Positions 1 through 61,954 of a DNA stretch of 64,000 nucleotides are shown piece by piece. Position 1 is the stretch's first letter, and every line of letters begins with the position of its first letter. The stretch is from Monocercomonoides exilis PA203 (Eukaryota > Protista > Preaxostyla). The notes under the pieces are model-generated. The model saw only the letters and a program-made list of their open reading frames with translations, was not told the origin of the DNA and did not search any database. A program made the translations under genes and the position numbers. The DNA lies in contig LSRY02000015.1 in assembly GCA_001643675.2 (NCBI GenBank), positions 1,488,001 to 1,552,000 on the forward strand, in the 5' to 3' direction.

Positions 1-3000
1 AAGTGATTTATTTGAACTTGTGAGCTGCAAGGCAACACAAAACACAGGTGGAGAGCACGGATATGGAGGAGGGATTTATCTTCATCTGGATGATGAGGCG
101 AGTTCATTCATTTTGAGGGATGTTTCATTTTCTGGATGTGATGCCAGAGAGGGGAAAGAAATCTTCATTAACTCTTATGATCTATCGAGTGTGATTAGCA
201 GAACATCGATGGGATTTGAAGTTGATTTGAATAACTTTACGAAATTGAATGGATTCGAGAGATCAACATTGAATGATGCATTTGCCATCCCGCTGGTGGT
301 GTATCTGTGGGATAACTTTTCAGGGTCTGCCTTTGTTGGAGGAGGATCATTGAGCCATGATTTTTCGATATGTGGATATGAGTTATTTCCATGCTCCACA
401 ATCGCGAAGGCAGCATCGGTCCATTTTGAAGGGAAGAAAAAAGACATAACCATTCTTGAATCATTTGCCTTTGAGGATGAATTGAGCTTGAGGACAGATG
501 AATGGAACGTCAAGGCAAAACAGAATGAGATGAAATGTGAGGTTGCCGATCTGACAGAGGGAACGCAAAGTGGATTGATTGAGAACTCAGTTTCTGTGTC
601 AATGACTAGCATTGTATTTTCTTTGATTCAATCGCTTTCATCTCATGAAAGTGTGTTTGAATGTCATTCTGAGAAACTCACACTGAACAAATGTGGGATG
701 GAAGGAGGGATTGAGGCTATTTCAACAGTATTTGTGAGTGTTGTTGGAGGGGCTGTGGAGGTGAGTGAGTTTTCAACAATGAATATGAGAATAGAAGATT
801 CATCGTTTTTCATTGTTGAGGGAAGTATTAATTCAAGGCCTTCAATGAACATGACAAACAGCGATTTTGGAGAAATCTCATTTGGCGATGGATGTATTGT
901 TGAGTTCCACAACGGAAATATCGAGAAGATAACAGGATGCACATTTTCATCGATTACTCGTTCGAAGGGAAGTGGAGGGTGCATCAGCATTACGAACGAT
1001 GGTTATGATGGAAGCGATTGCAAAGTGGAAATAAATGACTGTACATTTGAAGAGTGTGCTGTTGAAGAAGAAGGAACTGAGATTGGAGGTGGTGCACTCT
1101 TTTGTGAAGCATCTTCGAAAACGAATCTTTTGATAAATTTGTGTTCGTTTTATTGTTGCACAGCTCCATATGAAGGGGAAGAAGTTGGATATGGAGGAGG
1201 AATCATGTTGAGCTTGTTGAGTGAAATGGGCGAGGCAACATTTATGATATCCTCTCCAACTTTTTCTTCTGACAAGCCAAACAATGCAAGGTTTGGGAAG
1301 GATTTGTTTGTTTCGTCTCCATCGCTTATCAGCAGTATCAAGAACGAAACCCTGCCATTTGTGAATGATCGACTGGAGATACTGACCGAAGACTCGATGA
1401 GAGGGTACGATGGAGGAAACAGAGAGTGTGCAATCCCACTGATCTATTTCTGGAAAGAGGTTGGGTCGAGTGTGCATGTGGCGAGGGAAGGAAATAATGT
1501 GGTTGTGTGTGGGCTGTTGGAGTATCCGTGCGGGTCTGTTGATTATGGGCTGAAGAGAGGGAGTGGTTTGGGGATTTGGTCGATTGCCATTCAGGGGACT
1601 TGTGATGTGAGGAATGAAATGAGTGTGAGTGGGATGAGGCTGGAAGGAACAAATGGCGAAACAGACAAAATTCAATTTGTGAAAGCGATTGAAGGAGACA
1701 AGGGCGCTGTTGTTGAATGCAAAGGAGTTGTTCAATTCAAAGAAGTGGGGATGGTGATTCCGACTGCCTTCGATAACGAGGCAAGCATCCTCATCCAGAC
1801 AGGCTCAGATGCAATCAATACGAGTATTGCAGGTTGTTCAATTCACATGAGTGATAATGCAGAAGGTGAATTGACATTTGTATTGATAAGTGCCACAAAA
1901 GGAATTGTCGAGATTGAAAAGACAAAGATGGCAGGGTTGGCATCAATGCATGAGATAATGAGCATATCAGTTGGATGTGTGATAACCATGAGCGATGTGT
2001 CCTTTGAAGAAATATCATTGAGCGAGAAAAGTGCAATTGCGATGAGTGAAAGTGAGATTCCTGGAAATGGAAATGATAATGCAGAAGAAGAAGAGTGGAA
2101 TGTTCTGTTTGAGCAATGTTCGTTTGTGAATGTGAAGAACACAGTGCCAAACAACCCTTCATTTCTTTTCTGTGATATGCAGAATGAAATGAAATTGAAA
2201 ATGGAGAATTCGACAATTGATGGTTGTGGATCTGCAAGCTCGAATGAAGGAGGAGGCATGTTTTTCCTTCTCAACGAGAGGGGAAGACTGGAAATGAATC
2301 ACACAAATGTGACAGAATGCTTCTGTTCGAACAACGGGAGAGGCGGAGGATTGTTTTTGAAAACGCAGAGTGTTGCAAAGAAGTCTTTGCCATTTGTGCT
2401 GTCGAACATCACATTCAAGGAGAATGTTGCACTGAAGGGGAGAGATATGTTTGTGAAGTGCACAGACCTTGACTCGCAGATAAGTGAATCACAGTTCCTG
2501 ATAAACTTTGGGGAGCCGTTTGTGAAGGAGCTGGCGATATGGGGATGCACAGCAGACGATTATGGGGACGAAGAGGATCTGTTGGGGAGGGTGTATGTGT
2601 TCAGGAGCGAATTCATATTTGTGTCATCGATTGTGGGGAACAGCAGCAACAGCAAGAACTGTGGGGAAATGAAGGGTGCATGCTCATCGCTGAATGTTGG
2701 GGTGAGCCACATCATTCCATCGGATTATTCGCAGCTGCTGATATGGAATGAGACAACACTAACTGGTTCATGCTCAGCTCAAAAGGTGACAATCAAGTCG
2801 ATGGAGGCAAGCAGGAATGCTGAGATAAAAGTGAATGAGATGAGCTTGGCTGATGGAGTTGTGACAACATCAGAGACTGTTCGAATTGAGAAAGTTTCAT
2901 TTGTTTTTGGTGTAATGCAGAATGTTGTCTGCCCGTGCTTAATACACCAAGCGAATGGATCTCTAATTCTCGAATCTGTTTCATTCTTATCAGAGAGCGG

Positions 3001-5599
3001 ATCAATGGAGAATTCACAAACCCTTTTTGACTTTTCTCTGCTGGTTGTTGAAAATGGGATATTTGAGGCAGATCGATGTGGTGTTGGGTGCTTGAAATTT
3101 TCAAAGTCCATGTTTCAGATATTGTGCTCAGAAAGAGCAACATTTGAAGATCTGACTGTTTGCAATGCCCAATGCACAAGCTCAGCGATTGAATGTGGAA
3201 AGAACGAGAAAGTGATAATTTCAAAGTTGGCAGCCACAAACATTTCTCTCCAAGATAGAAGCCTTATCTCATTTGAAAATGGCCATTCTTCACTCGTTTT
3301 ATCTTTGGCGTTATCATCATTCACAAATATCAGCCGATTAGCATCCAGGCCTAGTGTTGTTTGCGCAACTCAACCTCTGGCCGGCTTGGAGATGTGCAAC
3401 TGCTCTATTCGTGAGTGCATATCAGATTGTGTGAAAGGAAGCCAAGTGGCAATTGCTTTGGCAGAAAGTGCTTTGATGGATTTGTGCCAGTTTGAGGGAA
3501 GCATGGCTGATAATACCGAAGAAATAAATGGTGTGAGTAATAAGATCTGTCAGTGGAATGGTTCAGTTGTTGATTTTTCGAAGAGTTCTGTAATGATAAA
3601 AGACACAACAATCTGCAACTCCTCAAAGGGAGGGATGACAGTGAGTGGAGGAAATGCGATAATTGAGAAAGGAGAGTTTTTGAATAGCAATCCATCAATA
3701 GCAAATTACCCATCACTGAGAAGAAATATCATCTGTTCAGATTCTGGAACATTGAATGTGATGAGTCTGAAAGGAGGAGATGGATGGGAAAGAAACACAT
3801 CACTTTGGATGTTGAATTATGGATGCAGCTTTGAAGGGATTATTTCTGAAAGAGCATCTTCATTTTTCATCCCAGTGTTGGAGAGTGTTGAAGCAAATGA
3901 GAAAGGAGCAGAAATGGAGATTGTATTCAAAGGGAAGCTTCTGCTGCCTTGCAACTTGTCATTCATGATTGTGAAACAGATGGGCGATGAAAAGCAGATA
4001 GAGAAATATGAGTTTGATGAAAGTGAATATGCTTCAGAGACAGAAGTCGAAGGGAGGCTGAAAAGGGAGATAATTCGTGAGGCAGGAGATGAGGAAGAGG
4101 TGAGAGTGAGCATTCTGTTTGGAAATGCCAAAAACCCATCATCCACTGATTCTTTCATTCTGAAGAACAGAAGTGAGCCCAAGGCTAATGGAGATGAAAG
4201 GATTGTTGAAGGAGGAAAAGAAGGGAAATCGTATTGGTTGTTGATTGTGATAATCATGGGCATCATATTGTTGATTGTTCTGATTGGATTTATTTTATTT
4301 ATTGTTCGATGGAGGAAAGTGAAGGAAAGAAATGAGGAATTGCAAGAGATTGTGAATGACAACATCAGAAAAGATCCCAAAGCATTTGAGATGGTTACGA
4401 TGGAGATGTCACCTGAGGAGCAGTGGAGAAGAGCAGAAAGAGAGGCTGAGAAGAAGAATGATGAGAGGATGAAGAAGAGAGTGTATGAGAAAAGCTTGGG
4501 ACACTCAGAGTCTTCAGAGCATCTTCTCTCCGAGAGTGGATCAACTGAATATATCCTTGGAAGAGACTCAGACAAGATCCCTCAATGGATGTCGGAGAAA
4601 GATGAAGAAGAAGAGATAAGGAAGAGAACACCTTCGCCATCAATTTCTTCCACTTGCTCAACTGATTCAGATTCAACATTTGTTCGAGGGGAGGATTTGT
4701 GTCCTACAACCTCGTCGATGTCGAACTTGGTTGATGCAATGGCCTGTTCATCGCCTCATGAGAAGCTGATTGTGGATTTGAGGGATTCATTGTTCATGCT
4801 CCTGCATGGGAGGAATAAGACAAAAGAGATGGCGATTGGAAGTCTTCAAGAGAGGGAGCAAACAGCTGCTCAGATCCTGTTCTGGGTGGCTAATCTCTCA
4901 CTCCATTCATTTGATGAGATGGAAAACCCTCTTCAATCATTGAATAATCTGAGTCCGCACATTGTTCTCTTCTCCGAGCACATGGTCATCTGCATTGTGA
5001 TGCATTCTGATATTTTACTAGATGATGATTCAGATTCATCATCCATTTCATCATCAACCGTTGTGACATCTGCCAGTGGCAATGATGATGATGAAGACTC
5101 TCTGCCCTCATCTGCCTTTGAGGAAGAAGATAGTTTCAAAAAAGAGTGCCTGAGGTGGAAGGCGCCTGAGCTGCATATCAACAAGAAGATGGGGGCAACA
5201 AAGGAGTCAGTTGCCTTTTCGATTGGGATGATGCTGTGGGAGTGCTTGACCCTTCAAATCCCATTTGGAGACTATGAAGCAGAAGTGGCTGGGCAGAAGA
5301 TAGTGAATGGGGAGCGACCAAGGGTTGAGAAGATTGGAGATCCGTCGATGAGAGGGATCGTGGAGCGGTGCTTGTTGGAAGAGAGCAAGAGCCGGCCGAC
5401 GCTTGTTGAGATGAAACGAGAGTTCATTCAGCGGTTTCCGCCAGGTGCAGTGACACTGACGATTTCAGATGCGATTGACATTGGCAGCGGGGTAGAAGAT
5501 AGGAGCAAGGCCAGCAATGAAAGTGGATCAAGCAGGACGATTTATAATGAGAGCTCAATTTACTCACTTGTAAGGCCTGAGCGTAGAGATCGAGAGTGA
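1..5599 (+). CDS. Giant single-pass receptor-like protein, paralog A (5'-truncated by the window): Cys-rich beta-helix/Pmp-like ectodomain modules, TM helix, degenerate TK/TKL-like kinase domain
   Basis: Frame is open from position 2 (SDLFELVSCKA, as in paralog C). It has repeated GGG(I/L/M)(Y/F) and CG....PC.(T/S) motifs, a TM segment YWLLIVIIMGIILLIVLIGFILFIV (~4230-4310), and kinase C-lobe motifs LRWKAPE, FSIGMMLWECLT..IPFG, GERP and RPT. Confidence 0.9.
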   Translation, partial: SDLFELVSCKATQNTGGEHGYGGGIYLHLDDEASSFILRDVSFSGCDAREGKEIFINSYDLSSVISRTSMGFEVDLNNFTKLNGFERSTLNDAFAIPLVVYLWDNFSGSAFVGGGSLSHDFSICGYELFPCSTIAKAASVHFEGKKKDITILESFAFEDELSLRTDEWNVKAKQNEMKCEVADLTEGTQSGLIENSVSVSMTSIVFSLIQSLSSHESVFECHSEKLTLNKCGMEGGIEAISTVFVSVVGGAVEVSEFSTMNMRIEDSSFFIVEGSINSRPSMNMTNSDFGEISFGDGCIVEFHNGNIEKITGCTFSSITRSKGSGGCISITNDGYDGSDCKVEINDCTFEECAVEEEGTEIGGGALFCEASSKTNLLINLCSFYCCTAPYEGEEVGYGGGIMLSLLSEMGEATFMISSPTFSSDKPNNARFGKDLFVSSPSLISSIKNETLPFVNDRLEILTEDSMRGYDGGNRECAIPLIYFWKEVGSSVHVAREGNNVVVCGLLEYPCGSVDYGLKRGSGLGIWSIAIQGTCDVRNEMSVSGMRLEGTNGETDKIQFVKAIEGDKGAVVECKGVVQFKEVGMVIPTAFDNEASILIQTGSDAINTSIAGCSIHMSDNAEGELTFVLISATKGIVEIEKTKMAGLASMHEIMSISVGCVITMSDVSFEEISLSEKSAIAMSESEIPGNGNDNAEEEEWNVLFEQCSFVNVKNTVPNNPSFLFCDMQNEMKLKMENSTIDGCGSASSNEGGGMFFLLNERGRLEMNHTNVTECFCSNNGRGGGLFLKTQSVAKKSLPFVLSNITFKENVALKGRDMFVKCTDLDSQISESQFLINFGEPFVKELAIWGCTADDYGDEEDLLGRVYVFRSEFIFVSSIVGNSSNSKNCGEMKGACSSLNVGVSHIIPSDYSQLLIWNETTLTGSCSAQKVTIKSMEASRNAEIKVNEMSLADGVVTTSETVRIEKVSFVFGVMQNVVCPCLIHQANGSLILESVSFLSESGSMENSQTLFDFSLLVVENGIFEADRCGVGCLKFSKSMFQILCSERATFEDLTVCNAQCTSSAIECGKNEKVIISKLAATNISLQDRSLISFENGHSSLVLSLALSSFTNISRLASRPSVVCATQPLAGLEMCNCSIRECISDCVKGSQVAIALAESALMDLCQFEGSMADNTEEINGVSNKICQWNGSVVDFSKSSVMIKDTTICNSSKGGMTVSGGNAIIEKGEFLNSNPSIANYPSLRRNIICSDSGTLNVMSLKGGDGWERNTSLWMLNYGCSFEGIISERASSFFIPVLESVEANEKGAEMEIVFKGKLLLPCNLSFMIVKQMGDEKQIEKYEFDESEYASETEVEGRLKREIIREAGDEEEVRVSILFGNAKNPSSTDSFILKNRSEPKANGDERIVEGGKEGKSYWLLIVIIMGIILLIVLIGFILFIVRWRKVKERNEELQEIVNDNIRKDPKAFEMVTMEMSPEEQWRRAEREAEKKNDERMKKRVYEKSLGHSESSEHLLSESGSTEYILGRDSDKIPQWMSEKDEEEEIRKRTPSPSISSTCSTDSDSTFVRGEDLCPTTSSMSNLVDAMACSSPHEKLIVDLRDSLFMLLHGRNKTKEMAIGSLQEREQTAAQILFWVANLSLHSFDEMENPLQSLNNLSPHIVLFSEHMVICIVMHSDILLDDDSDSSSISSSTVVTSASGNDDDEDSLPSSAFEEEDSFKKECLRWKAPELHINKKMGATKESVAFSIGMMLWECLTLQIPFGDYEAEVAGQKIVNGERPRVEKIGDPSMRGIVERCLLEESKSRPTLVEMKREFIQRFPPGAVTLTISDAIDIGSGVEDRSKASNESGSSRTIYNESSIYSLVRPERRDRE

Positions 5600-6176
5600 T
5601 GCACAAGCGTCACGGGTGAAAAACATTTGCATGGAAACTGCTTCATTGTTTGCACTGACATATAGTGAATCGATTGAGAGAAGTGGGCAAAACGTGAGCT
5701 AGCAGAGGGAGTTTTGATTTAGCGGAGCAAGCAAGAACCGCAAACGGGACAAAAGTCGTGGCTGAACAGCTTTGCTTGACAAAACGATGTGACTTCAATG
5801 ACAAGAGAAAGAAGAGTGGAGCAACCATACGGATGGTGTTGCTGCATCTCTGAAAATATATTGACAGTTGCTGTTGTAATTATATAGATGCCTTCATTTC
5901 ATCGTTTGGCTTCATCATTTTTTTTTCAAAGCATTCATCAAAAAAGCCTTAGTGAAAGCAAAATCATTAACTGTGGGACTTCGGTCCTTGAGGAATTGCA
6001 GAAATTTTTGATGGATAGTTTCTTTTAATGATTTTTTTAAGAATGAATAATTTAACCCAATTCACAAAAATGTATTTTTCACAGTCTTCGTAGATTTTTC
6101 TGATGAATGTTATTCTAACAATATGAAAGCATTTTTTTTTAGAGAAGAAAAAAAAACGTTGAAAATGATAATGTCT

Positions 6177-9100
6177 CTATGAAAGATGTGTTTCCATCTC
6201 TTTTTCCATCTTTTCAAGTTCCCTTTTCATTTGTAATGCCTTCTGTTTTTTCTTTTCTGCCTCTTTTCCTTTTTTATCTGATGCCAACTTCATAAGTTCT
6301 GGTGCATCCAAACGTGATGGCCCAGTAAGCCCAAATACCAGCTCTCCGTCGTCAATAACCTTCATAGCATCTCTCTCAGCTTGTGTTCCATCCTTCTGTA
6401 GCATAAACAAAGATACGGCTTCCTTTGCAACTTTTCCTGGCTTAACATTACCAGGAAGCAGCTTTGCATGATATTTGAAGTGTCTTGCAACAGAAAATGG
6501 AACGACCACAGGTAAAGCAGCTACAATTGTATCCTCCTGTGTTGGATTACCTGTAAGTTGTTTGATAATTGACAATGATGTATCAAATGGAGCGCTGTTT
6601 GAAGTGGTTGAAGAAATGGAAGAAGAAGAAGATGATGATGATGATGATGGCTGATTTGATTGAGACGAAAAGATGCCCTCTTCTACATCTGCGCTTTCCT
6701 TATCTTTCAGCGTTAAATCCTCTGATAGTTCTTCAATCATAGCTGATTCAAGGTAATCTTGCCTCAAGAGTGGGCAATCTCTCATCTTGTGGCCAAGCTG
6801 CTTGCATCTGAAACACACAAGTTTAGACGAAGCCAAGTCTGATGCAGATGAACTATCTCCACTTACACTTGCATCACTCGAAGGAAGAAGCTGTGAAGGA
6901 TCGATTCCAGAAGAAGCTCCAAAAAATGATGGTGGAAGTTCAGGGATTACATCTGTAACTGGAGGAACTGTCGAAGATAAGGCATCATCATTTTGTAGTT
7001 TTGATTGCGTGCTTGGCTTCCCTGCTTGCTGTTTTGAAGTTGGCTTTCCTTTGTCTCCTTTTTTCCCTTTGCCTTTCCCTCCTTTGAGCGCTTCGTCCTT
7101 TTCATTGTCTTTAAAAGCGCTTCTTGCTTCTCCTTCATCTTTCACAAAACGAGGAAGGACTTCGCCTTTCTTCCCCTTTATCAGCTCCATCCGAATGCGC
7201 CGTTCTTCTTCATCCTGATCAGCATACTTCTCTTTGATCTTCTTGTATTTCGATCGCTGACCTCGTTTCAGCTTTGTTGGTGGAACAGCAAGTGGCAGGT
7301 CATCCATTTTCGGTGATGGTGAAGACAACTTTGATTCAACAGATTTTGAATCAGATTTGTCTCTTTTTTCTTGTTTTCGTTTATCTTGTGTTTTTTTATC
7401 TTTTCCTCTTTCTTCGTCCTCCTCCTCTTCTTCTTCTTCTTCTCTATCTTCTTCTTCTTCTTCTTCATTGGATTCTCCTTCTGAATCATTCTTTTCTTTT
7501 TTCTTTTTTTCTTCCTGTTCTCTTTTTTGCTCTCTTTCAAGCTGCCGCCTTCGCTTCGCCTCTCTTTTTTCTTCTTCTTTCTTCTTTCTTTCTTCTTCCT
7601 CTCTCTTCCTCTCTTCTTCCATCCTTCTTTCTTCTTCTTCGTCAATGATATCATCATCTGCATCATACACACACTCCTTCACTCCTTTGCTTTCTCTTCT
7701 CTTGATGCTATCCTCGTCAATCACAAACATCATTGCATAGCCCATCGCCCCTCCATTCGCACTGCAATTCCACCCTTGACTCCCACTGCACCCAGGAATG
7801 CTGCTCAGCTGCGGGATTTCGTTGTGCTTGCCCAGTACCAAAAACGACCCTTTCCCCATGTACATCCCAGACGGCGCTGCCAGACGCACTTGCTCCGCCG
7901 TCACCCACCACGCATCCACATCCAGCACTCCGCTGGCCCATGCACGCGAATGAGCTACTGCCATAATCCCTGTCTCCGCAAGCGTGCGTGGCGGAATGGG
8001 CGGAATTTGATATGCTGAATGGCCTGACCTTTCATTGTCAGAGCTGTCTTCGTCGCTTTCATCCTTATTTTCTTTGCTCGAACTTCCTTTTTTATATTTG
8101 AGTGATTTGTTTCCCAGCACATTCTTGATGATAAGTGTGGCTGCTCCATCGATGTTTGCATGTACATATACGTCCTGCTTCTTCAGATACCTTCGCACCA
8201 ACATCTCGTTCGTGATGGCATCTCTCCCACACAGCACAAGATACCCGTCAGACGATATAAACCACACAAACTTCTCAAACCAGAACCGCTTCCGCATCTT
8301 CTTCATCTCTTTGTACCCTTTCAGCTCCGTCTGCTTCAGCGCCTGCTGCACTCTGCTCTGCGCCGCCTTCAGTGCCTCCATCGCCCCAACCTTCGCCTTC
8401 TTCAGATCAGACGACAGGTCCTTCTTCTTCTCAAAGTATGCTCTGCTGTTTCCATGTGCACTCAACGCCAAGTCGAGCGATATCGACAGCATTCCGTCGG
8501 TTGCCTTCTGACGCGGATTGGGCTTGCCCTGATTGGATCCTGCGCCTTTGCCTTTCTTCTGCTGCTGCCGTCGCTCACGCCTCAGCTGCCGCTTGCCTTT
8601 GTTTTGACTCCTTTCGGCTTCTTTTTCCTCTCCTTCTGCTTCTCCTTTCTCTTCTTCCTCGTTTTTCGCTTTACTTCTCTCTTTATTCTCATCAATTTCT
8701 CCATCACTTTCTTCCCCTTTCTCTTCCCTCTCCTCTTCTTCTTCTCCTTTATCTCCTCCGTCTTCCTCGTCCACCGACTTCAGCCGCACCACAATCTGGT
8801 TCGCCTCTAAATGCAGCTCCTCGATTATCTTCACCGTCTCGTCGCCCATCTGCTGGTGGTTCCGGATGATCCCTTTGATCTGCGCCCAGTCCATCCCCGT
8901 CGCCACCAGCGAGTTCACCACATCCAGACACCGCTGCACAACGTCTGCATACGCCTCTATCGTATGCCCCTTGGCTGTGTTGAGCTCTCTCTGGTAGTCG
9001 ATCTGGGACAGCCGCTGCTGCTGCGTCTGCTGCACAGCCTCCAGCCGCGTCAGGGCGGCTTCCTCGGCAGCAGACTTCGAAGAGCGCCCTTTTATTTCCT

Positions 9101-10777
9101 CGATCGTGCTGAAGTAATCGTCCAGCGCCAGGTCGAAGGACGGAAACTCCTTCACGCCGTAGCTTCCGCACTGGGGCTGGAGGGAGTCTGGTGAAGAAGA
9201 AGAGGAGGAGGAGGAAGATGAGGAGGAAGCTGGGCGGACTGAGATTTTCTTGACGATGTTTGAAAACATGATGGGGAAGAAGTCGACGTATTCCTCTGCC
9301 AGCTCATCTGCACCAGAATCTTGTTTTTCTTGTTTTGAGTCTGAAGATGACTCAGCAGATGAAGAGGCAGATGATGAAGGAGGCATCGTTGATTGAGCCA
9401 TTCCCAACAGGGATGCTGCGCTTGATGCAGAGGACGAGGAAGGAGGAGCAGATGATTTCTTAACCCATTTGAATAATATATAGCCTTTTCCCCTGATCAT
9501 CGACCTGTCGTGCAGCATGTGCTCTGTCTGTTTATGGTGATAAGTTGGCGCGTTGCAATTTATTTTATTTCAATTTATTTCATTCGATAAACAAAATGGC
9601 AAGCACATCCCATCCATATGCAAATTATCCGCAGAACATGAGATAAAATTCATTGAAAAATAAAAAGCGAAAAATATATAGCAAAATTCAAACATTCAAA
9701 AATGCTTCTGTCAAATCCTTCACAAATTGTGCATCTTGAGTCAAAAAAAGACAGTCGGCTTTTCCCTTTTGAGTAGAAACATCTGGAAGTTTCGGAATAA
9801 GATGCAGCGGTACAGCTTCCTGTGGTAACGAAAGTTGCACATTCGGATCAATATTACAACGATCAAGGCAGTAGTCAATGATATCTCCTCCGTATTCAAC
9901 GGAAGGCATCAGAAGCGCACGAATTGACCGATCTTTTTCTTTTTCTTTCCTTTGTGGCTTCTGCTTCTTCGAGGGAGCAACTGATTTTCCTTTTTCATTA
10001 CTCTTTTGGCCTTTCGTGTCTGTGCTCTCTTTTTCTCTTTTTTTACTCTTTTGTTCTTTTGCTGCAATTCCTTTGACAGCTTTATCATTTGCCTCTATCT
10101 CTTTGACTTCTTCTTCCTCTTCTTCTAATGGAGGAATAATTTCATTGGGATTTTCAACCCCGAACAAAGAAAGTGAAAGTGACTTAAAAAGACTCTTAAA
10201 CAAAAACTCCTCATTCATGATATCGTGTCTTCGAATTTTATCTAATTTATACGTTTGTCCCACAACCAAGTTATACTGTGGCTCAGGACGAGGAAACATA
10301 ACGCATAGAATTGTTTGACGGAAATCTGTCACAATGATGTTTCCAGGAGCATATAACTCTGCAATTAGATGATATCGATTTTCGCCTTGACCAAAAACAA
10401 TACAAATAACGCGGTCAACGCCAAGTTGAGCCACTTGTTCAACTTTTCTTGTCCTTAGATACTGCCTAGACTATTTTATATGCATTAAAGATTGATTATT
10501 AACAATTCAAACACTTTATCAATGTGAGCACAAATAAAAATATTTAAACTTTTTGAACAAATTGTGATTGTTTTTCTTTTGATTCGCGCATGAACTTTGT
10601 TGAATGCATTCGCTTTCCATTTTCAATAAGGATAAAATGTTTCGCAGAATCAATTGAAAATTTCAAAAAAATAGTGTTTGCGTTCAAATCATAAATGTTA
10701 TTTAAGCGTGTTCCAATTAGAAAATTTAAAGATCCAGCCTCAACAACTGTATCAACAAATGAAAATCTATTTTTCAT
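6177..10777 (-). CDS. NEMF: Ribosome quality control subunit NEMF/Rqc2, 3 exons (10777-10550, 10470-9694, 9527-6177)
   Basis: NFACT-N motifs MKNRFSFVD, QLGVDR and IAELY..GN; WFEKF.WFISSDGYLVL.GRDA..NE (NFACT-R); KLKRGQRSKYKKIKEKYADQDEEER; C-terminal KYHAKLLPG..KPGK. Both GT-AG introns preserve the frame. Confidence 0.95.
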
Positions 10778-33605: not shown

Positions 33606-33625
33606 CCCCCTCCCCCCCCCCTTCG

Positions 33626-33671: not shown

Positions 33672-33673
<2 letters not shown>

Positions 33674-39700: not shown

Positions 39701-42700
39701 TGACTTGCTTGCTTCTCGCACGGAACCTCCTGCCTTGCGTTGCATGTGCATCATGTGCAGCAGTAGAAGACAAAGAAATGTTGTATCTGGAGATGAGAGG
39801 GTCATAACATTCAGCCAATTGCAGAGATTTCAGAGCCGGTGGAGGAATTGGAGCTGTTCTTGGGCTCTCAGAAAAGCCAGAAGGAGAACTGAGCGCAGAA
39901 GTCATTCTAGCTTTATTGTTATCAAGTGGAGTGGCAGAATTTAATCGATTTGTTTTGCTTGATTGATGATCCTTCAAAGCATCTTGTTCGTCAGAAAGAT
40001 CGACACTTAAATCAAACAGCGCTGTTCCAGATGAAATGTCCATTGGATCAGAAAAGGAAGAAACATCTCTCCGTTTCAGTGTTTCTTCCAGTGAATCCAT
40101 CATAAGAGGCTCAGGAATCAGCGAATCGTGCAGCTCTTCGCCTGTCTCCACCATCGAAGTCATCTTATTCACTGCATTTTCAATTCGCGTTCTCTCTTTC
40201 TCTTCCTTCTGCTTTGTTTCCTGATCCAGCTTCGTCTTGTTACGCTCGATTCTCCGCTTTCTGGCTGCTTTTCTGCGGAGAAGGGAAGGCTGCATCAGAA
40301 GAGGAGGAATTATGCAACGCAGTTGATACGACAGAAGCGAAAGGAAAAGACTTTCGCTGTACGACGAACGCAAAACGAGTGCTGTTTCAGACGGCAAAGA
40401 AGATGGAAGTTGTTCAACAGCAGTTGAATTGTCTGAAACAGATGAAATCTCTTCAGATTCATTTGAAGTTGAAGAATCATCCGAAGACAATTGATGAGAC
40501 TCGTTCAGTTGTTCAGTTGCATCATCACTGCATTCTTTGCATTTTGTCAACAACCTTTCCACATCAGAAAGTGCTTTTATTTCTTCTTCTTTTTCTTCCT
40601 CTTCGCGGCAGGCGTCCTCTTTTGTCTGAATTATCTTGAAGAACAGCTCCTTTAATGAAAATGGCGGGAGAAGAGAAGAAGATCGCTGAGGAGCGAGGAA
40701 AGAATGAAGAGAAGATTCAATTGAAGATGGCTTATTCATAACAGCTTCGCATTTTCCTGTTGAATGAGAAGAATTTCCTGCTTCCTTTAATTCAAATGGA
40801 GGAGTATTTAAGCTGACAGTCGTTTCGGCCGAATTTGCCTGGAGAGAAGAAGCCAACGCAGAAGACAAAAGAGGCTGCCCAAATACAGACACTTGGCCAA
40901 TCAATTGAGGAATCTTTGTTTTTGATGCATTTTGTGAATGAGTGGCTGTGCTTGAAGCAGTATTTGCATTTGAATTAAATGGATTTCCAGTTGATTGATC
41001 AGCTAATAATATCTCATTCAAAATAGAATTCGTCTGCTTTTGAACAGAAATCGAAGAGGGAAACGTGAAATGAAGTTGGATAATTCGCACAAGTCCAACT
41101 GGAACTGGATCTGTGCCTTGTGGAAGCGGAAGGGGATTAAATCCGCTGCAATCAACAGAATAATCACTTTTATCACCAGAACACAAACTTCGCATTCCGC
41201 TTTCTCTTCCATTGTTCGCAGCGAAGTCTGTTGAAAACGTCGTTTCTGCCTGTTTTGGGAAGCAATACGGTGGAATTTGCAAAAAGAGTGTGTTTGCCGG
41301 AAGATTCAGCGAATGAAGTGAAGTTTCTGTCAAAGAGAAGCTGAACTCCCGCTGAGACTTCGAGTGCTGCGAAGAAGATGGAGAAGACGAAGAAGATGCT
41401 GAAAAACCTGAAGAAGCAGAAGAGATTGCATTTTGATTGGGAGGTAATGGTGGAGGGGGGTTGCTTCCTTTCCTGGATTGTAAAGACGTGCCTCTTTCTT
41501 TTGCTGATTGATTATCATTTGTTCCATCAAAATGTGAAAGAGGAAAGCCAGACGAAGTCATTCCTGATGAATTATTGGGAGACACAAAAGAAGAAGAAGC
41601 AGGAAGAGGAAGAGCAACAGAAGAAAGAACAGGAAGAAGAGAGTCAAATGTCATTCCCATCGCAACGGAGACTGAGATTGGCGAGGATATAAGCAGCATT
41701 GTTGATGGAACAGAAGAAGAAACAGAAGAAGAAGAAGATGATGATGCAGATGCAGAATTGATTGCAGATGAATGAGGAGCAGGTCTGTGGAAGGTCAGAT
41801 GTGTCACAAGAGAAGGAACAGGAAGGATAATTGTGATGACTGGAGAGGAAGAAGAACAAGTTAGGGAGTTTGGCTCCAACGAAGACTCACTAATGTTACT
41901 GGGAACTTCAGAGACATACAAAATGTGCTGTTTGAGAACAGCGTTTGCCAAAGAAAACTGAGGAAGATAAGAAAGACAGGGCGGAAGCTCTTCTTTGATA
42001 CCAGCTTCTGTATCATCGGACGGACTGTTGCTTGCATCTGGTTCTGAAGATGATGACAATGAAGATGATGATGCCGATTCTGCGAATGGGTTAGATGACT
42101 CTGGTGAATGGAAGCCAGCTTTGACTGTTGGCCTCACAAGAGCTTCTTCCTCTTCTTTCAGCATCTGCTCAATCTGATTTCTTTGCTCCATCATTTCTTC
42201 TTTCTCATTAGCATCAAAGTTGTTGCATCCATCTTCTCCATCTCCACCATTTCCGTAGTTTTCATCCAACATTTCCAATGCGCGCTTTCTTTTCTTCTCT
42301 CTCTCCACTTCAACTGAATATCTGCCTCTCCCGTCAATCATCAGCGGAGTCTGCTCGTCCATCGAGCCTGTCATAAACAGAGAACCCGAATCCAACCCAG
42401 AAAACAGATCAGCAGAAAGAGGACTCTGCGAAAAAGTGGAAGAGAAAAGAGATTTGTGATGAGATGAAGAATTGCGATTCAAAGACGTGTTTAAAAAACC
42501 AGATGGTTGATTTGACTCTGAGTGTTGTTGTTGATTGCCATCACTTGTAGACAAAGAAGCAGAAGAGTCATAAAATGAGGCATAAGATATAGCACCTCGC
42601 GATAAGCATTCCATCGCAGGGACAAAAGGTGGAAATTGAGTGATTGGACCAGAAGGAATTGTGCTTGTTATTTGCGAATAATTAAAAGGAGATGATTCAA

Positions 42701-45700
42701 AAGTGTTGTTAATTTGTTTGCCTTCAAAATCATTTCCTTTTTCTTGATTGTCATCTTCAGACATTTCGTCTTTTTCTCCCATATTCTTTGCAAATTTCGT
42801 ATTCTGAGTATAAAATGTGACGTATTCCTTTCTTCTTTGCAGAGAATTTACTCTGTCTTCATCTGCACTGTTCTGCAGGAGCATTGCCAGTCCACTCTGA
42901 ACTTCGCCCAATCCATCAAATCCCTTCTCTTCATATGGATCAAACTTCTTTCTGACAACCTGCAAATGAGAGGATGAATTGTTAGAAGCAGCTTTGCCTT
43001 CTTCTTCTTCTCCTTCAATTTTTATGCTTCCATCACAATGAATGTCTTTTCCATCAGCAGTCTGCTTCATTTTTCTGTTTCTCCAACGAATCTTCTTTTC
43101 ATCATTAACAGAAGCTGCAATCCATCTCATTCCCATTCTCCATCCAACGCTCCTTCCCAGTCCGCTGCTTTCTTTGCTTCCCCAGAAAAGAGACGGGTAC
43201 AGTGATGGCAGCATCCACAAAGCTGCAAAGGAAGTGTAGCGGATGTGCCGAGTTGGGTCTGAGAACACGTTCTGAAAGCGCCTCTGGATCGATATGATTG
43301 CATTTGATGGAGTTGACACAGAAGACGTGGAAGATGAAGAGGAGAAGAACGTTTGAGCATCAATTGAAAGCGGGTTGTTCGAGATATAAATTGAAGGTTG
43401 GATTGGCTCTGAATTGCTTGCAGCACCATCGCTTTCTGCTTTTTGTGGAACTTTATCTTCTCCTTCGTGATTGCCTTCAAACTGACCTTTTTCATCATCT
43501 GTCGCTTTTGCATTTCTATTCAAAGCATTTATTTCCGATCGAACATTTCTTATAATCCTTACCACTTTTGAATGTGAAGCATCAAGCACAAGTGAATTCA
43601 GAACAGGTGGAATAGACGTGGCTACAAGCTGTGCATGGCAGTCCAGCTGCAGTGAGTCGAGATATTGTAGTGACGATTCATCGAGCGAGGAAGAGAAAGA
43701 GGAGTCCATGTAATCCTTTTCGTTCGGATCTTCCTCTCTTTTCTGAATGTCAATGGCTGTTGATTTATTTGCGCTTGATTGGATGGAAGATGATGAAGAT
43801 GCAGTTGTTGTTAAAGCCAAGTTCAATTGTGTGTTGTTTGTTGATGCCAAACTGTCAGATGAAACAGAAGACATTGCCTGCGGTACGAGGAGCGGAGAGG
43901 AAAGTGAATGCAGCTGAATAAAAGAGCGAATAAGGTGCGTGTGCGTTGCGATGGATGATGTGTATAGAAGCGAATTGGAGTTCGCGTGAATAAGAAACTG
44001 CTCAGAAAGCGCAGAAAGCGCATGCAAAGAGAAGAAAGAGCGGATGACAGCAAAAGAAGATAGCTTTGCTTGAACCTGCTGCTGAGACGTTGAAGTGCGG
44101 GGGAGAAGGCTGTCTGGAATGTATGTCTGATTGGATATCGCCTCCAATGTCTTTGTAATCATGAAATAAGAAGGCAGTTTTCGGTGGGTTTTTTCCAGAG
44201 ATATGATTGTTTCAACGGGTAGACAGCCTTCAGAAGAGATGTTTATAAGTTCTTGGAGTTGAGGATACGAGTTTAATGTCTGTTCAAGTTGTGAGACATC
44301 AGCGCTTTTGTTATTTAATGTTTGTACCACATTGTCTCCTTTCATCATATCATCTTTTATGTGATCTTGGCATTGATCATTTTCTTCTTCCTCCTCCTCC
44401 TCCTCTTCTTCCTCTTCCTCTTCATCTCCATTTTGTTCATCTCCTTCTGTTTCATATTCGCTTTCATCTGCCCCATCAGATTTTGCACCTGAATCATCCT
44501 CCAATCCATCCACTTCATCATCGTTGATTCTATCTTTTCCTATTACTTCTCTCTCTTCCCTTTCATCTCCACCAACCGCATCCTCATAATATCCCAATCT
44601 GTTCAGCATCTCCTGGATGACCGGCAGCGATAGAAAGTACATCGACACACTCGTTCTGTCCATTGAGTCTGCGCAGTTCGTCCTCACCAGCCCTTCCTGG
44701 CACGTGAGCTGCAGAAGCGACAGCTGTGCCAAGGGCGACGGAGGCCACAGAAAGCGAGGAGACTGCGGCTGCGCAAGCGGATGGCGCGGTGGATGCACAA
44801 AGTGCGGGAGAAGCTGCGGTTCAAGCTCGCAATCGTCACTATTATCTTCACAGGAAAGCGATTCGTGCCAGCTGTATGGTGTAAATGAGTGGTAGTGCTT
44901 TGGCTCAGTCAAAGGAGAGGACGCTTTTGCAATCACAGACACATCTGCAAAGGCAGCTTCTTCTCCGTTGCTGCACTGGATGTCTGTGGCGTCTGTGAGA
45001 TAATATCCGTCTTCCTCCAAAGACGGATTCTCAACTCGGCTTTCCTCAGAATTGCTTGAATGTTGTTCGATCACAACACTTTGTGATACTTTTGCCGAAT
45101 TCTCGTTTTCTTCTTTCTCGTTCTTTTCATCATTTGCAGTTTCTTTCTCCTTTGTTTTTGCTTCTTCCTTTGTTTCCCATTCATTTTGCATCAAGTTCTC
45201 TTTCAGAATCAAACCAGATGACATTCCAGCCTGTTTCAAAGACTGTGCCATTCTGCTCCACAAACCCAGTACGCTCTCCTCTGCACCCAGCTGCTTGTTC
45301 AGTCCGTGCCAATCAAAAGACACCAACAGAACAGGAAAAGAAGAGGCAAGCTCAGACGATATGGTTGCGATAGGTGAGGAAAGACTACTACGCGTGAAGT
45401 GAGAAAGATGAGAAGAAGAAGAAGACGAAGAAATGGTGTTTTCAAAAGAGATCAAAGACAAATCGTGTTCATCATTGCTATTTTGTGAAGTGTTTTTGTT
45501 GAGATCCTTTGTAATTGGGCTGACAATTGCTTTCTCATCAACTGATTCTTTTGACTGAAGTTCAGTTTGAAGTGTTGAAATATCATCCTGATTTAAAGCC
45601 TCATCTTTCTTGTTCTCTTCTTCTTTCTCTTCTTTCTCCGTTTCTTTCTCTTTCTCTTTCCTCCTCTTTCCTTCCAATTCTCTTTCCTTATCAATCATTT

Positions 45701-48700
45701 GCTTAACAATGAATTCTGCTTTCCTTTCCTTTTCTCTCTTCTCCTTGCGCATCGTCAAATCCGCATCATCTGCCCGTAATCGCTGCAGCGCCGACTGAAA
45801 CTGTTCAGTCAGCTCAAACTCGTTTTTGTGCTTCTCATCAACATGCAGCAAAGACAGACAAGAAATTGGAATGTGTGGAAATGATGGATCGTTTTGATTA
45901 TCTTCATCGCTGCTTTCTTCTTCCTTCTGCTCGTTTGCGTCTTCGTTATTGTTATTCTCGGTATCTTCCTCATCTTTGGTTGCTTGAATAAATTTGTTTT
46001 CACCAATTTGTTTGTTTTCTGTTTTATCCCCTTCGTCGCCATCAGATAGCACAACTGTGATATCAAACGAACTTGAAAGCTTTTTCGGTTCCATTTCGTT
46101 TTGCTCTGAGCCTTCTTTTGATTTCCCCACTGAAATTCTTCTCATATTCCTTGCATAAGCCCCACTTCCTTCTTTCTTCTTCCTCCTGTTCCTCATTCGC
46201 AGCGCCCACTCCTTTTCCTGTTTCCATCGGCGCCAGTAGTCGATCCTCGCCCGCACTCTGTCCCAGTACTTCTTCACCCCAAACGAGTAAACCGTGTCCT
46301 TGTCGATAGACACCTGTGCTGTGTTGATCAGAGAAGACACAGAAGCCGACCAGCCAATCGGAATGGTACCGCGGAGGATGAGAAAGGAGCACCAGGCTCC
46401 GACAACTGACAGCTGTGGATGAGACACTACATTTCCATTGGTAGCACTTGTTGCTGCTGAGTATGTATTTATTGTGGCAGAGGAGTCTTCGTTATCTGTG
46501 CTTGCCGAATTGGATGAATTGGTTATGTTGACCGTGCTGGTTATGTTCGGCTTATTCTTCAGTAACTCTTTCGAAAGTACTCTCACCTCATCTCTCATCG
46601 CCTCTTCCATCCTCTTTCTGTTGGTCGCACATTCTGTCTCCAAAGTCCAGCAAACGATTTCCGTCTCCATTTCGTTGCCATTTCCTCCTTCGCTGTTGAT
46701 GCCCCTCGCATTGTAGCGTGTTCCCGGATGCAGGCTGCTTTTGCGCGACAGCAGCGACATCATAAAAAGAGGCTTTCGGATGTTTCCTACAAGAGACGGA
46801 GCATTTTCCTCTTCTGCATTCGCTTCCTGATCGAATGGCAAAGTCGAAGATTGCTTGATTCTATCATAATGCATCAAGTTACTTTTTGATTTGGCAGAGG
46901 TACTTTTCCTGTTGGAATGAGATGTTTGTTGTTTAGTCTTTGAAAACGAAGCATGGGAATCTTTACTATTCAAATATGGAGGCGGCGGAGGAGGGGTTTC
47001 AGCAGCTGTTCTTCGATTTCTTTGACTTGAAACATCCTTATCGCTCTTTTTGCCTTCGATCATTTGACTATCTGCTTTCTGTTCATTCATTTTCCCCTTC
47101 TCATTTTCCCTCTGTTCTTTGTGCGTCCAGGGGATTGTGGTATCTTTGGAGAGTGGAGCGAACGCAGAGGAAGTGGCTGCACCTTGCAGAAGCACAGACA
47201 CCCATTCGCTCAGCCCGTGAGACACAAACATCGCGCGGAAGATGTTGTTCCAGCAGAAAGACGGGTCGATGCTGGAAAGCGATGTGGCTGCAAAGGGAGA
47301 GCTGGAACAGTGCTGTGTTTGAAAAGATGGACTGGTTGAATAAGATGAGGGATTAGGCGATGATATATAAAAGTTGGAAGAAGAAGAAGAAGTTGATGCG
47401 AATGAACAAGAAGAGGAAGGGAAAGGATGAGTAAGATCCAACGTGTCGCAGAAGTAATGGAACTTAGAAACAGCAAAGGAAGAAGAAGACTGATGAGACA
47501 TTGCATCTACGTATTCAAAGGGAAGGTTGGACGACAGCTGCGAAGACGCCGACGACGAAGAAGAACTTGAAGATGAAGGATTTGCGAATGAAGCAGAAGA
47601 ATTGGTAGAAGTGGTAGGGATTTGGGAAAGAGTATTACTTGTAGGCATTGGCTGGCGAGATGGCTGTCCGGGTGCTGCGTTGGAAGAATGAGGCGAATGC
47701 ACCTGAGGTGATTCGCTCGGCCGAGCCTTCAGTTTTGAGAAAAATGAACTCATCCATCCACTTTTCTTTTTGTCTGGTGTTTTTGATGGTTGGTTGGCTA
47801 ATTCTGAACGAGAAGGAACTGAGTGAGAAGATGCTTGAGATAACGAAGAAGGAGATTGAGCAGAAGACGAAGAGGAAGGTGAGGGAGGAGAGGAAGAAGA
47901 TTGAGAAGAGGAAGAAACTGGAGATGCTGTTAAGGATGATGCTAATTGGCTGCTTGGAGTATTCTTCAGAGCATCAGAAATAGCATTCGATATTGAATAC
48001 GGATGTGCAGGAGAGGAAGCAAAAGAGCTAATTGCTTTGTTATTGCTATCCTCTGTCAAGGCATCAAGCAAATCATCCGTGACAATTGAAGTCCAGTCAT
48101 TCAAACCTTCTGACGGAGTAGCTGCCATAAAAGATCTGTAAAAATCAGGCGTTGTATTCATTCTCGAATCAGAAATTTGTAGACGTGATAAAACTTCCAA
48201 TTTCTTCGTATTACAATTGCCCGCAATTCTGTGTGGTGCTTCATTTTGCTTTTCACTTATTTTAATAATTTTTTCTTCGAAAGACTTCAAGTGCGAAGGA
48301 AATGAAGGTATAGAAATAGCTATTTGAAATTTGAAAAGTAAAGTTAACTAGAAAATTACGCATTGCAAACAATTAAGTTCTTCAATTCCAAAAGTGCAAC
48401 TTTGGGCATATTTATCAGTTTGAGAAAAAAATTCTGCAATTTTCTGTGAGGTTGATGGTTGCTTTAATTCTGAGTAAGATTGCGGTTGAAAGAAATTTGA
48501 AAGAGGAATTCTTCTCCACTCTGCTTGCCTTACTGAATAAATTGAATGGAAAGGAGGAAGGATCATGGTCCTCACCACAGAAGTCGCAAAAAGAAAAAAA
48601 GCTTCGTTGGATAGAGTTATATAACCGAGCAAAGCATCTGCTTGTAAAATAATACGTGGCGAATTCTGCGTATGTTGAAGGAATTTCATTGCCTGCCTTG

Positions 48701-58800: not shown

Positions 58801-61800
58801 AGATGCTCCATTCGCCACTCCAAACAAAACACTATTTTCTGTCGAGCTCATATCCTCGGCACTCAAAGAAGCGAATGAACCAGCAGTATTGATTCCATCA
58901 AGAGAAATCAACGGACAATTCCCAATAACCAGAGACAATACATTCAACAATGAAACTGAAACCTCACCTGCTGTTGCTGACAAAAACACATAAGATAATG
59001 CTGATTGAGGATCTTGAAATGTCAGCGAGCAGCCATCAAGCGAAAATAACTGTGAGGTGGAATAGAAGAATGCTTCGTGGTTTGGAAGAGCAGATGGAAC
59101 AGAGAAAACAAGTGAACTCACATTCGTATTTGCACTGACCGTTGTCATGCTTCCGTCACTTCCATTCGGATCGTTGCTCACCTCCCATCCACTGTTTTCA
59201 TCTTTCCCCCTGATTGTGTGTTGGAAGGAGTTGAATATCAGCTCATTTTTCAGTTCAATCATCCCATCGACAACAATCTTCTTTTCACTTATTTGCCTTG
59301 TCAGAGAATGCTTCAGAGTCAGACAGGGAAACTCAGCGTATCCACAACGAGAATGATCAAATGCATCAACATTGCTCACAATAATCTCTTCTGGCAAAGG
59401 AATCAAATAAACACAAAGTGGAATCGGAATTGAATCATTTCCATTATCATACCCTTGTATCGTGCTCTTTGTGTCAAACGAAGCTGTCAACGAAGTGATT
59501 TTCCCACTTCTTGCTGTTGTTTCCAGATTGATTGAGTCAACAAAAATGTCACTTCCCCATTTGGCCCTGTTTCTTTCAAATCCTGATGAAATCTGAAACT
59601 CTGCATTTGTGTCTTTCACTTTCAGCCCAACCCCTCCTCCTCTCCCTTGAGTAGTCGAGGCATAACAGTTTCTCACAACACCTCCACTTACATTCAATGA
59701 ACCAACATTCCCTATTTCAATCATCATCCCTCCTCCAAACTCAGAGGCTTCACTCCCACACCCATCTATCGTGCATCCTTCAATAGTTATCGAATATGAC
59801 CCTTCACCCACACTCATCAGCGATGATCCTGCTGTTGTCCTCACAATTCTGTCGAAAGTGCAGTTATCCAGAGACAATGTTACAAGCGATCCCTGAGATA
59901 GAGATATCAAACTTGCTGTACTGAATGTTTGCCCCCATCTCACATCTTTCATCTTCAAACTTCCCCCTTCCATCTTCACAAGCGAGTTCTGAATGCTCCT
60001 CTCTTCTGAATGAGCAGAATCCATCGATATATTTGTTCTCTCCAAATTGATCCCTCCAGCCCCTTGAACCTCAAACAGTTTGCTTCTTCGATTATTTTCA
60101 AATGATGAATTGTGAACCACAGACAGATCGCTCGCACTCAATTCACCTGTTCCAACACAAAACAGACTCAGTCCATTTGATTCAAATTTGGTTTCAATGG
60201 CTGAGTCAGCTGGTGAAACTCCATTCACAGAGATTGTTTTCTCTCCAATATCAACTCCTTTTCCCTCCACAACTGTTCCACCCAACACCTTGATTTCCTC
60301 CACAAATCCAGAAATCATTTGAGTCAGACAATGACTGATAGTGAGGCATGCACAGCTTTCATTCAATCCGCAGCTGAATGTGTCTTTTGCATTTGACTGT
60401 GTTTGAACTGAAGCAACAAATCTTATTCTCCCTCCATTGTTAGGAAGCCAATTGCTTTTATCTCCACCTGCGTAATATCTCACTCCTTCTGATCGTGTCG
60501 AATAACAGAAGACAGTTAGGGATATTTGTCGCATTATCATAAACACAAATATCATTGCCACGAGGTGCAGTGTTGTTATGAAAAAAGCAAAACCATAAAA
60601 GGTTTTCACAAAAACCATTTGTTAGAATACTTACGGCCCCTCCATCAAAATCAGAATGGCAATTGTTGAATTGACAATTTTTTGTTATGACATAATCAAT
60701 TGCATCCCAATGAATGAATCCTCCACCGTTAGAATTAGTTTTATTGTGTCCGCTACAATTTATGAAAGAGCAATCCAAAACACAATCTTTGATTTTTGCT
60801 GTTTTTGATTCCCAAATACCTAACCCCCCTGTATCATCTCCTGACCACCCATCTTTGAACAAACAATTCGAGCAAAAAACTTGTTCACTTATTCCGGAAA
60901 GATCTGCTCCTGCTCCTCCATATCCAGGACTTTCTGAAAAGCAGAAACATTCAATGAATGTTGAATGCTTCATTGTGCATTCTGCAATTTTCAAAGCAAA
61001 TATTCCTCCACCTCTTGTTTCAGTTGCATTGCATTTCACAAATGATGAATTTTCAACTGTTAATGTTGCACTCGAATTGTCATGAACATACAGTGCTCCA
61101 CCGCATGGAGCAGAGCATTCTTTCCATTCAGCATTCTTATATATCTGTGTTTGAGTTGTTGAATTTCTTTCTGTGTTTCCCACTCTCCAATCCACCCTTT
61201 CGTTGTGAAGGAATGTGCAATTGTTGCAAGAAAATGCAATGGATTTTTCTGTTCCACTCACAATCCCTCCCTCCAAAACATTCATCGATCTTTCAACTTG
61301 ACAATCTTCCATTGAACTTGTTTCCATCATTGGCTCTTTTTCAACTGGTATTTCATCTGTCTCCATGAATTTCATTGAGATGTTAGAAAAAGCACAGTTT
61401 TTGATTCCTTCAAATGACCCTTCTCCATTTCTCAAAATGCTTCCACTCCCACAAAACACAATGTTCCTCCACTCACTGTTTCTCACAAGCAACGATGCAT
61501 CTTCTCCTTCCATCTTAACAAGACTTGTTATGAACTCACAATTATTGTCTCTTTTTTCTGTATTCAAAGTGGTGTTTATCATTTCGCATGTTCCTTCATT
61601 GAAGACAAAATGCCCATTGAAACCTCTTTTTCTCATCAACATGCAGTCATCAATGCGCAGGAGTGACTTTGCTTCAACATCAAATGCCATGTTATCATCT
61701 GCCTTTTCTAGCATTATTTCCTTCAATTCGACTGAAGAATTGTGTATTTCGCAGAATAGCTGAACAACACTCCCTTTCTCCAAAATATGACTTTCAGACT

Positions 61801-61954
61801 GAGTAGGAACATAATCAACGAGATGTCCATTCCTTTGTGAATCATTTCTATCAGTGCCACAAAATGTGAAACACAAGCACTCAGCCAAAATAAAAAGAAT
61901 CATATTCAAAAGATTCTTATGGGTCATTATTAACCATATTTTTATTAAATACAA
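52867..61954 (-). CDS. Giant single-pass receptor-like protein, paralog C, split by one frameshift near 60508 (possible pseudogene or assembly error)
   Basis: ORF 60458-61954 (signal peptide and N-terminal beta-helix region) overlaps ORF 52867-60618 (five CG....C modules, TM, degenerate kinase) in a different frame. Near-identical to A over much of the ectodomain. Confidence 0.85.

Follow-up and report, generated by a model that had tools for sequence, protein, structure and literature searches.

Three receptor genes of Monocercomonoides exilis PA203 look as if they had been put together from pieces of one another and of hundreds of related genes. What process made them this way, and does it serve the receptors in any special manner? 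The genes lie in a window of 64,000 nucleotides, which is contig C9:1488001-1552000 of the 82.3-Mb, 101-contig assembly. Gene A (1-5599, forward strand) is cut by the start of the window, so only the last 1865 codons of its open reading frame (ORF) fall inside and the 5' end lies before it. Gene B (20469-28562, forward strand) has 2697 codons. Gene C (MONOS_5343, protein P0018) is on the reverse strand at 52867-~61927. The features of A described below are on the forward strand unless they are arms of an inverted duplication. The original prediction was that frequent segmental exchange couples swappable ectodomains to a homogenised signalling tail in these genes, and that this is a dedicated diversification system comparable to antigenic variation or immune receptors. 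We argue that the exchange belongs to the whole family and is not dedicated to diversification. The genes are very probably the product of pervasive short-tract ectopic gene conversion, accompanied now and then by larger exchanges, in a very large family on which purifying selection acts.

The three genes do not share one pattern of similarity. By blastn A matches C at 89% identity across all 5.3 kb of A within the window. The match between A and B begins only at A 3543, at 87%, and the match between B and C is confined to the last ~1.65 kb, at 84.5%. A therefore resembles C across the ectodomain, where their synonymous divergence (dS) is 0.17, and the ectodomain of B is remote, just as had been claimed. 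Further downstream the closest partner switches repeatedly. A 4100-4313 is identical to B 27120-27333 (forward strand) in the three-way alignment. This 214-bp block is exactly the one that was predicted, and it includes the transmembrane (TM) segment of A at 4235-4309, which is 25 hydrophobic residues in the alignment. It holds 26 consecutive informative sites that unite A and B (A 4109-4309). A neighbouring family member, L003, is nearly identical to A and B across the same block. At 87% identity, 214 bp in a row without a difference would arise by chance with a probability of ~5e-11. The identity is not due to constraint, because C differs at 26 sites inside the block.

The partner changes right after the TM segment. 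A juxtamembrane patch at 4314-4344 unites A and C for 15 consecutive informative sites, and B differs at 15/31 bases. At 4656-4930 sites that unite A and B dominate again, and two runs of them are 17 and 19 informative sites long. At 5005-5050 B and C agree for 16 consecutive informative sites and A is the odd one out. The motif contrasts that were first noticed by eye (KVKERNEELQE, YEKSLGHS, GRNKTKE, FWVANLSLHSF, SDCSSDSD, the ELLNGT motif and the TM segments) are all found in the protein alignment, and every switch of partner that they were said to mark is present. A 3SEQ-type permutation of site order in the A/B/C triplet gives p from 5e-5 to 1.5e-4, so the run lengths are beyond chance (p<=1.5e-4). 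When only third codon positions are used the result for gene B is p<=2.5e-4.

The switching makes more sense once the genes are divided up. Each gene consists of three modules with separate histories: an ectodomain, a conserved core of ~1.8 kb, and a variable C-terminal end. In A the core spans 3543-5320, as set by the boundaries of homology, and it holds the extracellular stalk, the TM segment and the cytoplasmic tail up to the kinase-like lobe. Its equivalents are B ~26563-28330 and C ~54917-53140. Within the core (A residues 1181-1773) dS is 0.42-0.65 and dN/dS is 0.16-0.20. Just upstream of the core and after residue 1773, the comparison of A with B is saturated or has no meaningful alignment. 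The C-terminal end of A (5321-5599) belongs to one of several classes, whose pairing with the core has been reshuffled, and the last ~90 codons of A and C are unrelated. There is also a breakpoint between A and C at 3293-3322, where identity falls from ~97% to ~76-81% and dS rises from ~0.08 to ~0.5. Read-derived contigs start at this place, at a branch point of the graph. Downstream of A ~3300 the A-C dS is 0.5-0.7 (0.63 for the core), so these two genes are closer in the ectodomain than in the core. The tail is therefore not simply homogenised among the three genes, and this part of the original prediction fails. What survives of the idea that segmental exchange couples swappable ectodomains to tails is that exchange is family-wide and that modules have been reassorted.

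The same modules are seen in other loci. Homology to A starts at recurring points (about 3548-3552, 3688-3697 and elsewhere) and stops at about 5310-5322 in most of them. Over 120 annotated proteins the ectodomains have a median identity of 25% and the cores one of 73%, and for the C-terminal ends the figure is 32%. Ectodomain identity and core identity are only weakly correlated (Spearman 0.20), and nearest neighbours are concordant between modules in just 23-28% of these proteins. Gene B is a good example. It has a signal peptide, an ectodomain of ~2240 amino acids of another class, the core, and a C-terminal end of its own. The relatives of its ectodomain (76-84% identity) are on contigs C59, C14, C12, C8 and others, and 0/33 are on C9. 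The relatives of its tail are mostly on C9 and C55, with 22/39 best on C9. The difference in the C9 share (22/39 against 0/33) has a Fisher p of 4e-8. Judged by where its relatives lie, B is clearly a chimera of an ectodomain related to those of other contigs and a core typical of its C9 neighbours. L003, which is 60 kb upstream, has yet another ectodomain, but it differs from A by one base over A 4000-4310. Ectodomains of the A type are mosaic too, since the pairwise homoplasy index (PHI) on amino acids gives z=-11 among eight proteins.

The signal is not peculiar to the window. The tail DNA used as a query finds >1100 first-look candidate matches in the genome, and the tail matches 535 database proteins. 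We aligned 32 tails, namely A, B, C, 27 loci from the genome search and 2 further loci. PHI rejects a history free of recombination for this set (z=-12.1, 0/1000 permutations), and does so at third codon positions only (z=-4.7, 0/1000 permutations), where the signal is weaker than at first and second positions. In 60/496 pairs of tails the shared fragments exceed in length those of all 2000 permutations. The squared correlation (r2) between biallelic sites is 0.32 at <=10 bp, 0.078 at 26-50 bp and ~0.055 beyond 200 bp, and 0.034 would be expected under independence. Core sites are near linkage equilibrium across paralogs beyond ~50 bp. In a wider set of 71 tails the variable patches come in a few recurring forms of several residues, such as GRNEKKE (32), GRNKTKE (20) and GRNAKKE (7). 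These forms combine almost at random (Cramer's V 0.09-0.35).

Trees and painting tell the same story at the level of segments. The nearest relative of each of A, B and C differs between segments, and the painted tracts of partner similarity are 30-300 bp long. A clade of A, B and L003 has a support of 93 in 4651-4940 and is rejected in 4941-5330 by the approximately unbiased (AU) test, with p-AU 0.0018. A clade of A and C is also rejected in 4941-5330. A single topology for all windows had been named as the outcome that would speak against mosaicism, and it was not found. The tails are not decaying either. Intact ORFs are found in 31/32, with a median dN/dS of 0.14 that indicates purifying selection. 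The only broken tail is L024:1493-2816 (C9:412450-413754), which has 5 stop codons, and its inverted partner L017 is open.

Many of these genes occur as inverted pairs, and the pairs bear on the age of the exchanges. A itself lies in an arm of an inverted duplication (1-6008). Its twin A' stands head-to-head ~20 kb upstream at C9:1471511-1477519 (L035:3511-9519). The arms are 99.83% identical over 6009 bp, and 6 of the 8 substitutions fall in two tight clusters (P ~1e-5). The first ~400 residues of A and A' are unrelated. Other pairs show the patches even more plainly. L027 and L038 have 9 differences, all inside 94 columns and none elsewhere, and L017 and L024 have 18, all inside the first 100 columns. 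L011 and L012 have zero differences. Stretches of 100% identity reach 214-277 bp between genes whose remaining core dS is 0.4-0.6. Long identical stretches and patch-wise differences between near-identical arms both point to recent events. Genome-wide there are at least ten palindromic family pairs whose members have equal identity to the query, on C9, C55, C75, C51, C16, C10, C64 and C95. They are found both head-to-head and tail-to-tail, with arms that are near-identical save for dense patches.

A mosaic in a repetitive genome could be an error of assembly, so it is worth considering how well the sequence is supported. The translation of gene A is 100% identical to protein P0121 (2853 aa). 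In the database cluster of A are P0121 (A) and P0007 (A'), both of them Nanopore-based models, and P0122, a 454-based model of EukProt. Over 1865 residues P0122 and A show no mismatch; P0122 lacks the 22 residues that directly precede the TM segment, and this gap is probably a modelled intron. P0018 (C) is one identical sequence in NCBI (a 1,837,935-bp contig) and EukProt. Since the proteins of A and C are the same in the 454-based and Nanopore-based annotations, the mosaic is not an artefact of Nanopore assembly or polishing. Mis-polishing by Pilon as the cause was rejected on this agreement. Exact read-derived contigs, all of them short, cover 3293-3566, 4063-4150, 4675-4762 and 4987-5077. 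They come from 2016 DNA, 2022 DNA and two 2024 RNA runs, the last from another study. A-specific RNA contig pieces are present at low depth. Those on the unique 3' end of A suggest low-level transcription, though they may stem from DNA carry-over.

We can now weigh the other explanations. One can imagine a scenario where there was no exchange at all, and where the patches came from constraint that varies along the gene, from selection for the alternative motifs in parallel, or from homoplasy on a single gene tree. It would fit that purifying selection on the tail is strong, that the variable patches, being short motifs, could each be selected as a unit, and that the PHI signal is stronger at first and second codon positions. 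However, the signal persists at third positions, and explanations by selection only were rejected on these tests. The 214-bp identity spans 26 sites where C differs, dS itself is several-fold different between adjacent segments and pairs, linkage decays with distance, and palindrome arms that are otherwise identical differ only in dense patches. We hold it to be extremely unlikely that exchange played no part. A scenario of old domain shuffling concedes some exchange but makes it ancient: a few early duplications or crossovers, a core kept similar by constraint, and nothing continuing. This would explain why many loci share boundaries of homology at A ~3548, ~3690 and ~5320, and why subfamily structure is visible among the ectodomains. 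It does not explain stretches of up to 214-277 bp without a difference in genes of core dS 0.4-0.6, nor patches between arms that are otherwise 99.8-100% identical, and we regard it as very improbable. An artefact could have arisen if Nanopore reads of paralogs were collapsed, or if short reads were mis-mapped in ten Pilon rounds. The assembly was made with Canu, Nanopolish and 10 rounds of Pilon from a genome that is 46% repeats (PMC8767320). Only 81% of sampled 31-mers of the tail of A are in the best DNA run, and the contigs on this stretch are short. Still, the proteins of the A tail and of C (residue 636 to end) are identical in both annotations, and exact contigs of independent runs, including RNA of another study, cross several junctions. 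Blocks differ at up to 15/31 bases, which is too many for mis-mapped reads to win, and the near-identical arms of A and A' were resolved separately. There is hardly any chance that assembly made the mosaic.

The remaining alternative is the one that was first proposed. Segmental gene conversion would be actively used to make new receptor variants, with regulated or exclusive expression and donor copies. There is much that looks right for this. The family is very large and its genes are mosaic. Variable modules flank a conserved core that is a potential recombination handle, the ectodomain is also mosaic, patch 'alleles' are reshuffled combinatorially, and many members sit in palindromic pairs. 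However, mosaicism is present in both the ectodomain and the TM/cytoplasmic core, with no evident targeting to the exposed part, and the best-defined tracts sit in the TM and cytoplasmic core. The sample has no silent or defective archive, given 31/32 open tails at a median dN/dS of 0.14. The receptor genes are interspersed with housekeeping genes, with no sign of an expression site at the locus nor, in these data, of switching. Short Logan read contigs, which carry no phase across identical blocks, have no heterogeneity beyond the cross-mapping of paralogs. Passive processes leave the same signatures in any large family of similar genes. With intact, constrained copies and tracts in the TM/cytoplasmic core, the likeness to antigenic variation or immune receptors is not supported, and we consider a dedicated system unlikely.

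Pervasive gene conversion is therefore the explanation we prefer. It starts from what is observed, which is mosaicism, incongruent histories along the gene, linkage decay, discordance of modules, intact constrained ORFs and the agreement of two assemblies. In this scenario ordinary homologous recombination between paralogs would give the patchwork similarity. Most of it would be short-tract ectopic (non-allelic) gene conversion, of tens to a few hundred bp, inside the ~1.8-kb core. The favoured partners appear to be neighbours on one chromosome and the two arms of an inverted duplication. Occasional longer exchanges that end in the core or at its edges would re-pair classes of ectodomain and C-terminal end with a given core. 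Purifying selection and exchange together would maintain the similarity of the core, and the core may in turn act as the homology block that enables its flanks to be reassorted. The direction of transfer, its non-reciprocity, its rate and any functional benefit are things that we infer. A bolder version makes the core a portable recombination cassette, with continual, even mitotic, re-pairing of beta-helix ectodomains, tail motifs and C-terminal ends, and with palindromic pairs as the workshop. We doubt that this is so. If it were, it would mean a selectable combinatorial repertoire of receptors for glycans or prey in a eukaryote without an adaptive immune adversary.

It must be noted that several points weigh against pervasive conversion. 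The sample is 32 tails and about 120 annotated proteins from a family with >1100 first-look DNA matches. The segment trees are poorly resolved and most AU tests are non-significant, so the argument uses two rejections, and the clades for these tests were picked after the data had been seen. No donor was found for any single patch, be it in A and A' or in other palindrome arms, among the genome match lists and the 32 tails. The 4309/4314 junction is confirmed at the protein level only and by no listed contig. B is without a check by two assemblies because no gene model of B is on record. A star-like radiation with multiple hits could partly account for the low long-range linkage disequilibrium. 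It is inadequate as a full account because no decay with distance would come from it.

What do these genes encode? Members of the family are, by prediction, giant single-pass type-I receptors with a beta-helix ectodomain, a stalk, a TM segment and a kinase-remnant tail. A signal peptide and one TM helix are seen in the ORF translations and the protein alignment. An ectodomain fragment of 606 residues (2399-4216) was modelled with AlphaFold2 and came out as an all-beta solenoid: the prediction is a right-handed parallel beta-helix and, after it, a stalk rich in beta strands. The predicted local distance difference test (pLDDT) is 78 and the predicted TM-score (pTM) is 0.71. The Foldseek matches of the model are phage tailspike and polysaccharide-lyase beta-helices, at E 3e-5 to 1e-3 and a probability of ~1.0 with a TM-score of only 0.2-0.34. 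The ectodomain is thus predicted to be of the pectin-lyase-like type. There is no Pfam match in the ectodomains of A or B even at E<=5, two relatives carry a precomputed PF13229, and a shape search of the ESM atlas returned weak solenoid look-alikes only. A role in recognising glycans would be a guess from the fold alone.

The tail was called a pseudokinase from the start, and the case for this is stronger than was meant. What can be recognised in A is a C-lobe remnant from the APE motif to helix I (5138-5431, positions 160-257 of Pfam PF07714). The family profile matches TAK1, ZAK, ILK and BTK at residues ~162-259 only, with E 1.7e-7 to TAK1. The model of the cytoplasmic tail has a pLDDT of 49 with long stretches predicted to be unstructured, and only the C-lobe remnant reaches 64-88. 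Its top Foldseek matches are all kinase domains and all weak (E>=0.095). No Gly-rich loop, VAIK, HRD or DFG is visible in the family consensus or the protein alignment, and the tail model has no folded N-lobe upstream of the C-lobe, in a part that is largely of low confidence. By these alignments the tail is a pseudokinase remnant in which only the last ~100 residues of the kinase domain are recognisable. Since the complete catalytic motifs are not seen and only the C-lobe is recognisable, we argue that the family cannot be catalytic.

The family seems to be confined to this lineage. All strong protein matches in a database homology search are MONOS_ proteins of M. exilis. Matches to the tail profile over its full length are likewise all from M. 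exilis; after them come fragments, ordinary kinases and three environmental proteins that match weakly. The three environmental proteins (P0225, P0251 and P0231), from Logan and JGI metagenome contigs, match the non-kinase part of the tail weakly. They may be relatives in other, unsequenced oxymonads.

The gene models in the window deserve some attention. In the annotated model of gene C an intron at about 60490-60820 links two ORFs. They were handled separately, and the comparison was made with the database model P0018 and not with a joined model. From C residue 636 to the end, the ORF translation and P0018 do not differ. The public model starts at an internal Met and so omits the likely signal peptide of the ORF. 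It treats an in-frame 85-codon stretch (C residues 551-635; window 60490-60820, reverse strand) as an intron. The public model of C probably needs revision. Gene B is a clean ORF of 2697 codons, yet there is no record of a gene model or protein with its sequence, and the homology matches do not include it. The public annotation may have missed or split it.

Between the receptors are housekeeping genes, so the receptors are not a pure tandem array. These encode an NFACT/Rqc2-like protein (6177-9518, reverse strand), a Vps4-like AAA ATPase (31913-33469, forward strand) and a SNW/SKIP protein (33903-34736, reverse strand). A single ORF of 3854 codons (36726-48290, reverse strand) has an N-terminal SacI-homology (Syja_N) phosphoinositide-phosphatase domain, and then a very long tail that is 18% serine.

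M. exilis is the first eukaryote known to lack mitochondria, and its largest gene family is the one described here. The family is annotated as tyrosine kinase-like (TKL) kinases (PMC6759080). The published accounts consulted treat it as such, and we found no word in them on its architecture or evolution, nor any mention of gene conversion or mosaicism in this family in the papers searched. We argue that the annotation should change, since the members examined are not active kinases but giant receptors that combine a predicted beta-helix with a dead kinase stub. The family also overlaps much of the 35% of the genome that is labelled 'unclassified repeats'. Because its tails are near linkage equilibrium across paralogs, a single gene tree is meaningless for it. 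On present evidence no new kind of mechanism is revealed. The family is a natural system for measuring the tract lengths of ectopic conversion and the dynamics of palindromes in a metamonad.

It remains to place the family among systems that are known. Antigenic-variation families, such as the mosaic VSGs of trypanosomes and the homology blocks of Plasmodium var genes, use segmental gene conversion. There too conserved blocks that flank variable parts are the recombination boundaries, and new mosaics are made from family members. However, those systems have expression sites or exclusive expression, archives of silent genes or pseudogenes, and immune selection on the exposed domain, and there is no silent archive among our 32 tails. 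A second system is the transmembrane kinase (TMK) family of Entamoeba histolytica. It is attributed to Beck et al. 2005 in PMC10463195, and EhTMKB1-9 are treated in PMC2880585. This family too is large and lineage-specific, its members are single-pass receptors whose tails are kinase-like, and the organism is likewise an anaerobic gut protist. Some members are near-identical and some are truncated. Its ectodomains differ in being Cys-rich and lectin- or VSP-like, and its kinase domains are complete. No sequence relationship to the tails of M. exilis was found, the full-length matches of the tail profile being those given above.

Clusters of plant receptor kinases and receptor-like proteins (Xa21, Cf-4/Cf-9) diversify by sequence exchange between paralogs. 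They share single-pass receptors, solenoid ectodomains and clustered families with M. exilis, and in both blocks are reshuffled by unequal crossing-over and gene conversion. In the plants exchange and positive selection focus on the leucine-rich repeats that bind ligands, and the kinases are active. In M. exilis a beta-helix ectodomain is predicted, only a dead remnant is left of the kinase, and it is the tail that has the clearest tracts. Multigene families are well known for ectopic gene conversion and concerted evolution, and the large palindromes of primate sex chromosomes are one example of conversion from arm to arm. Such families have the same short tracts, mosaic paralogs and incongruent trees, their physically close copies are more similar, and their inverted arms are near-identical. 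M. exilis differs from them in that hundreds of genes of 6-12 kb take part, and that their sites approach linkage equilibrium beyond 50 bp.

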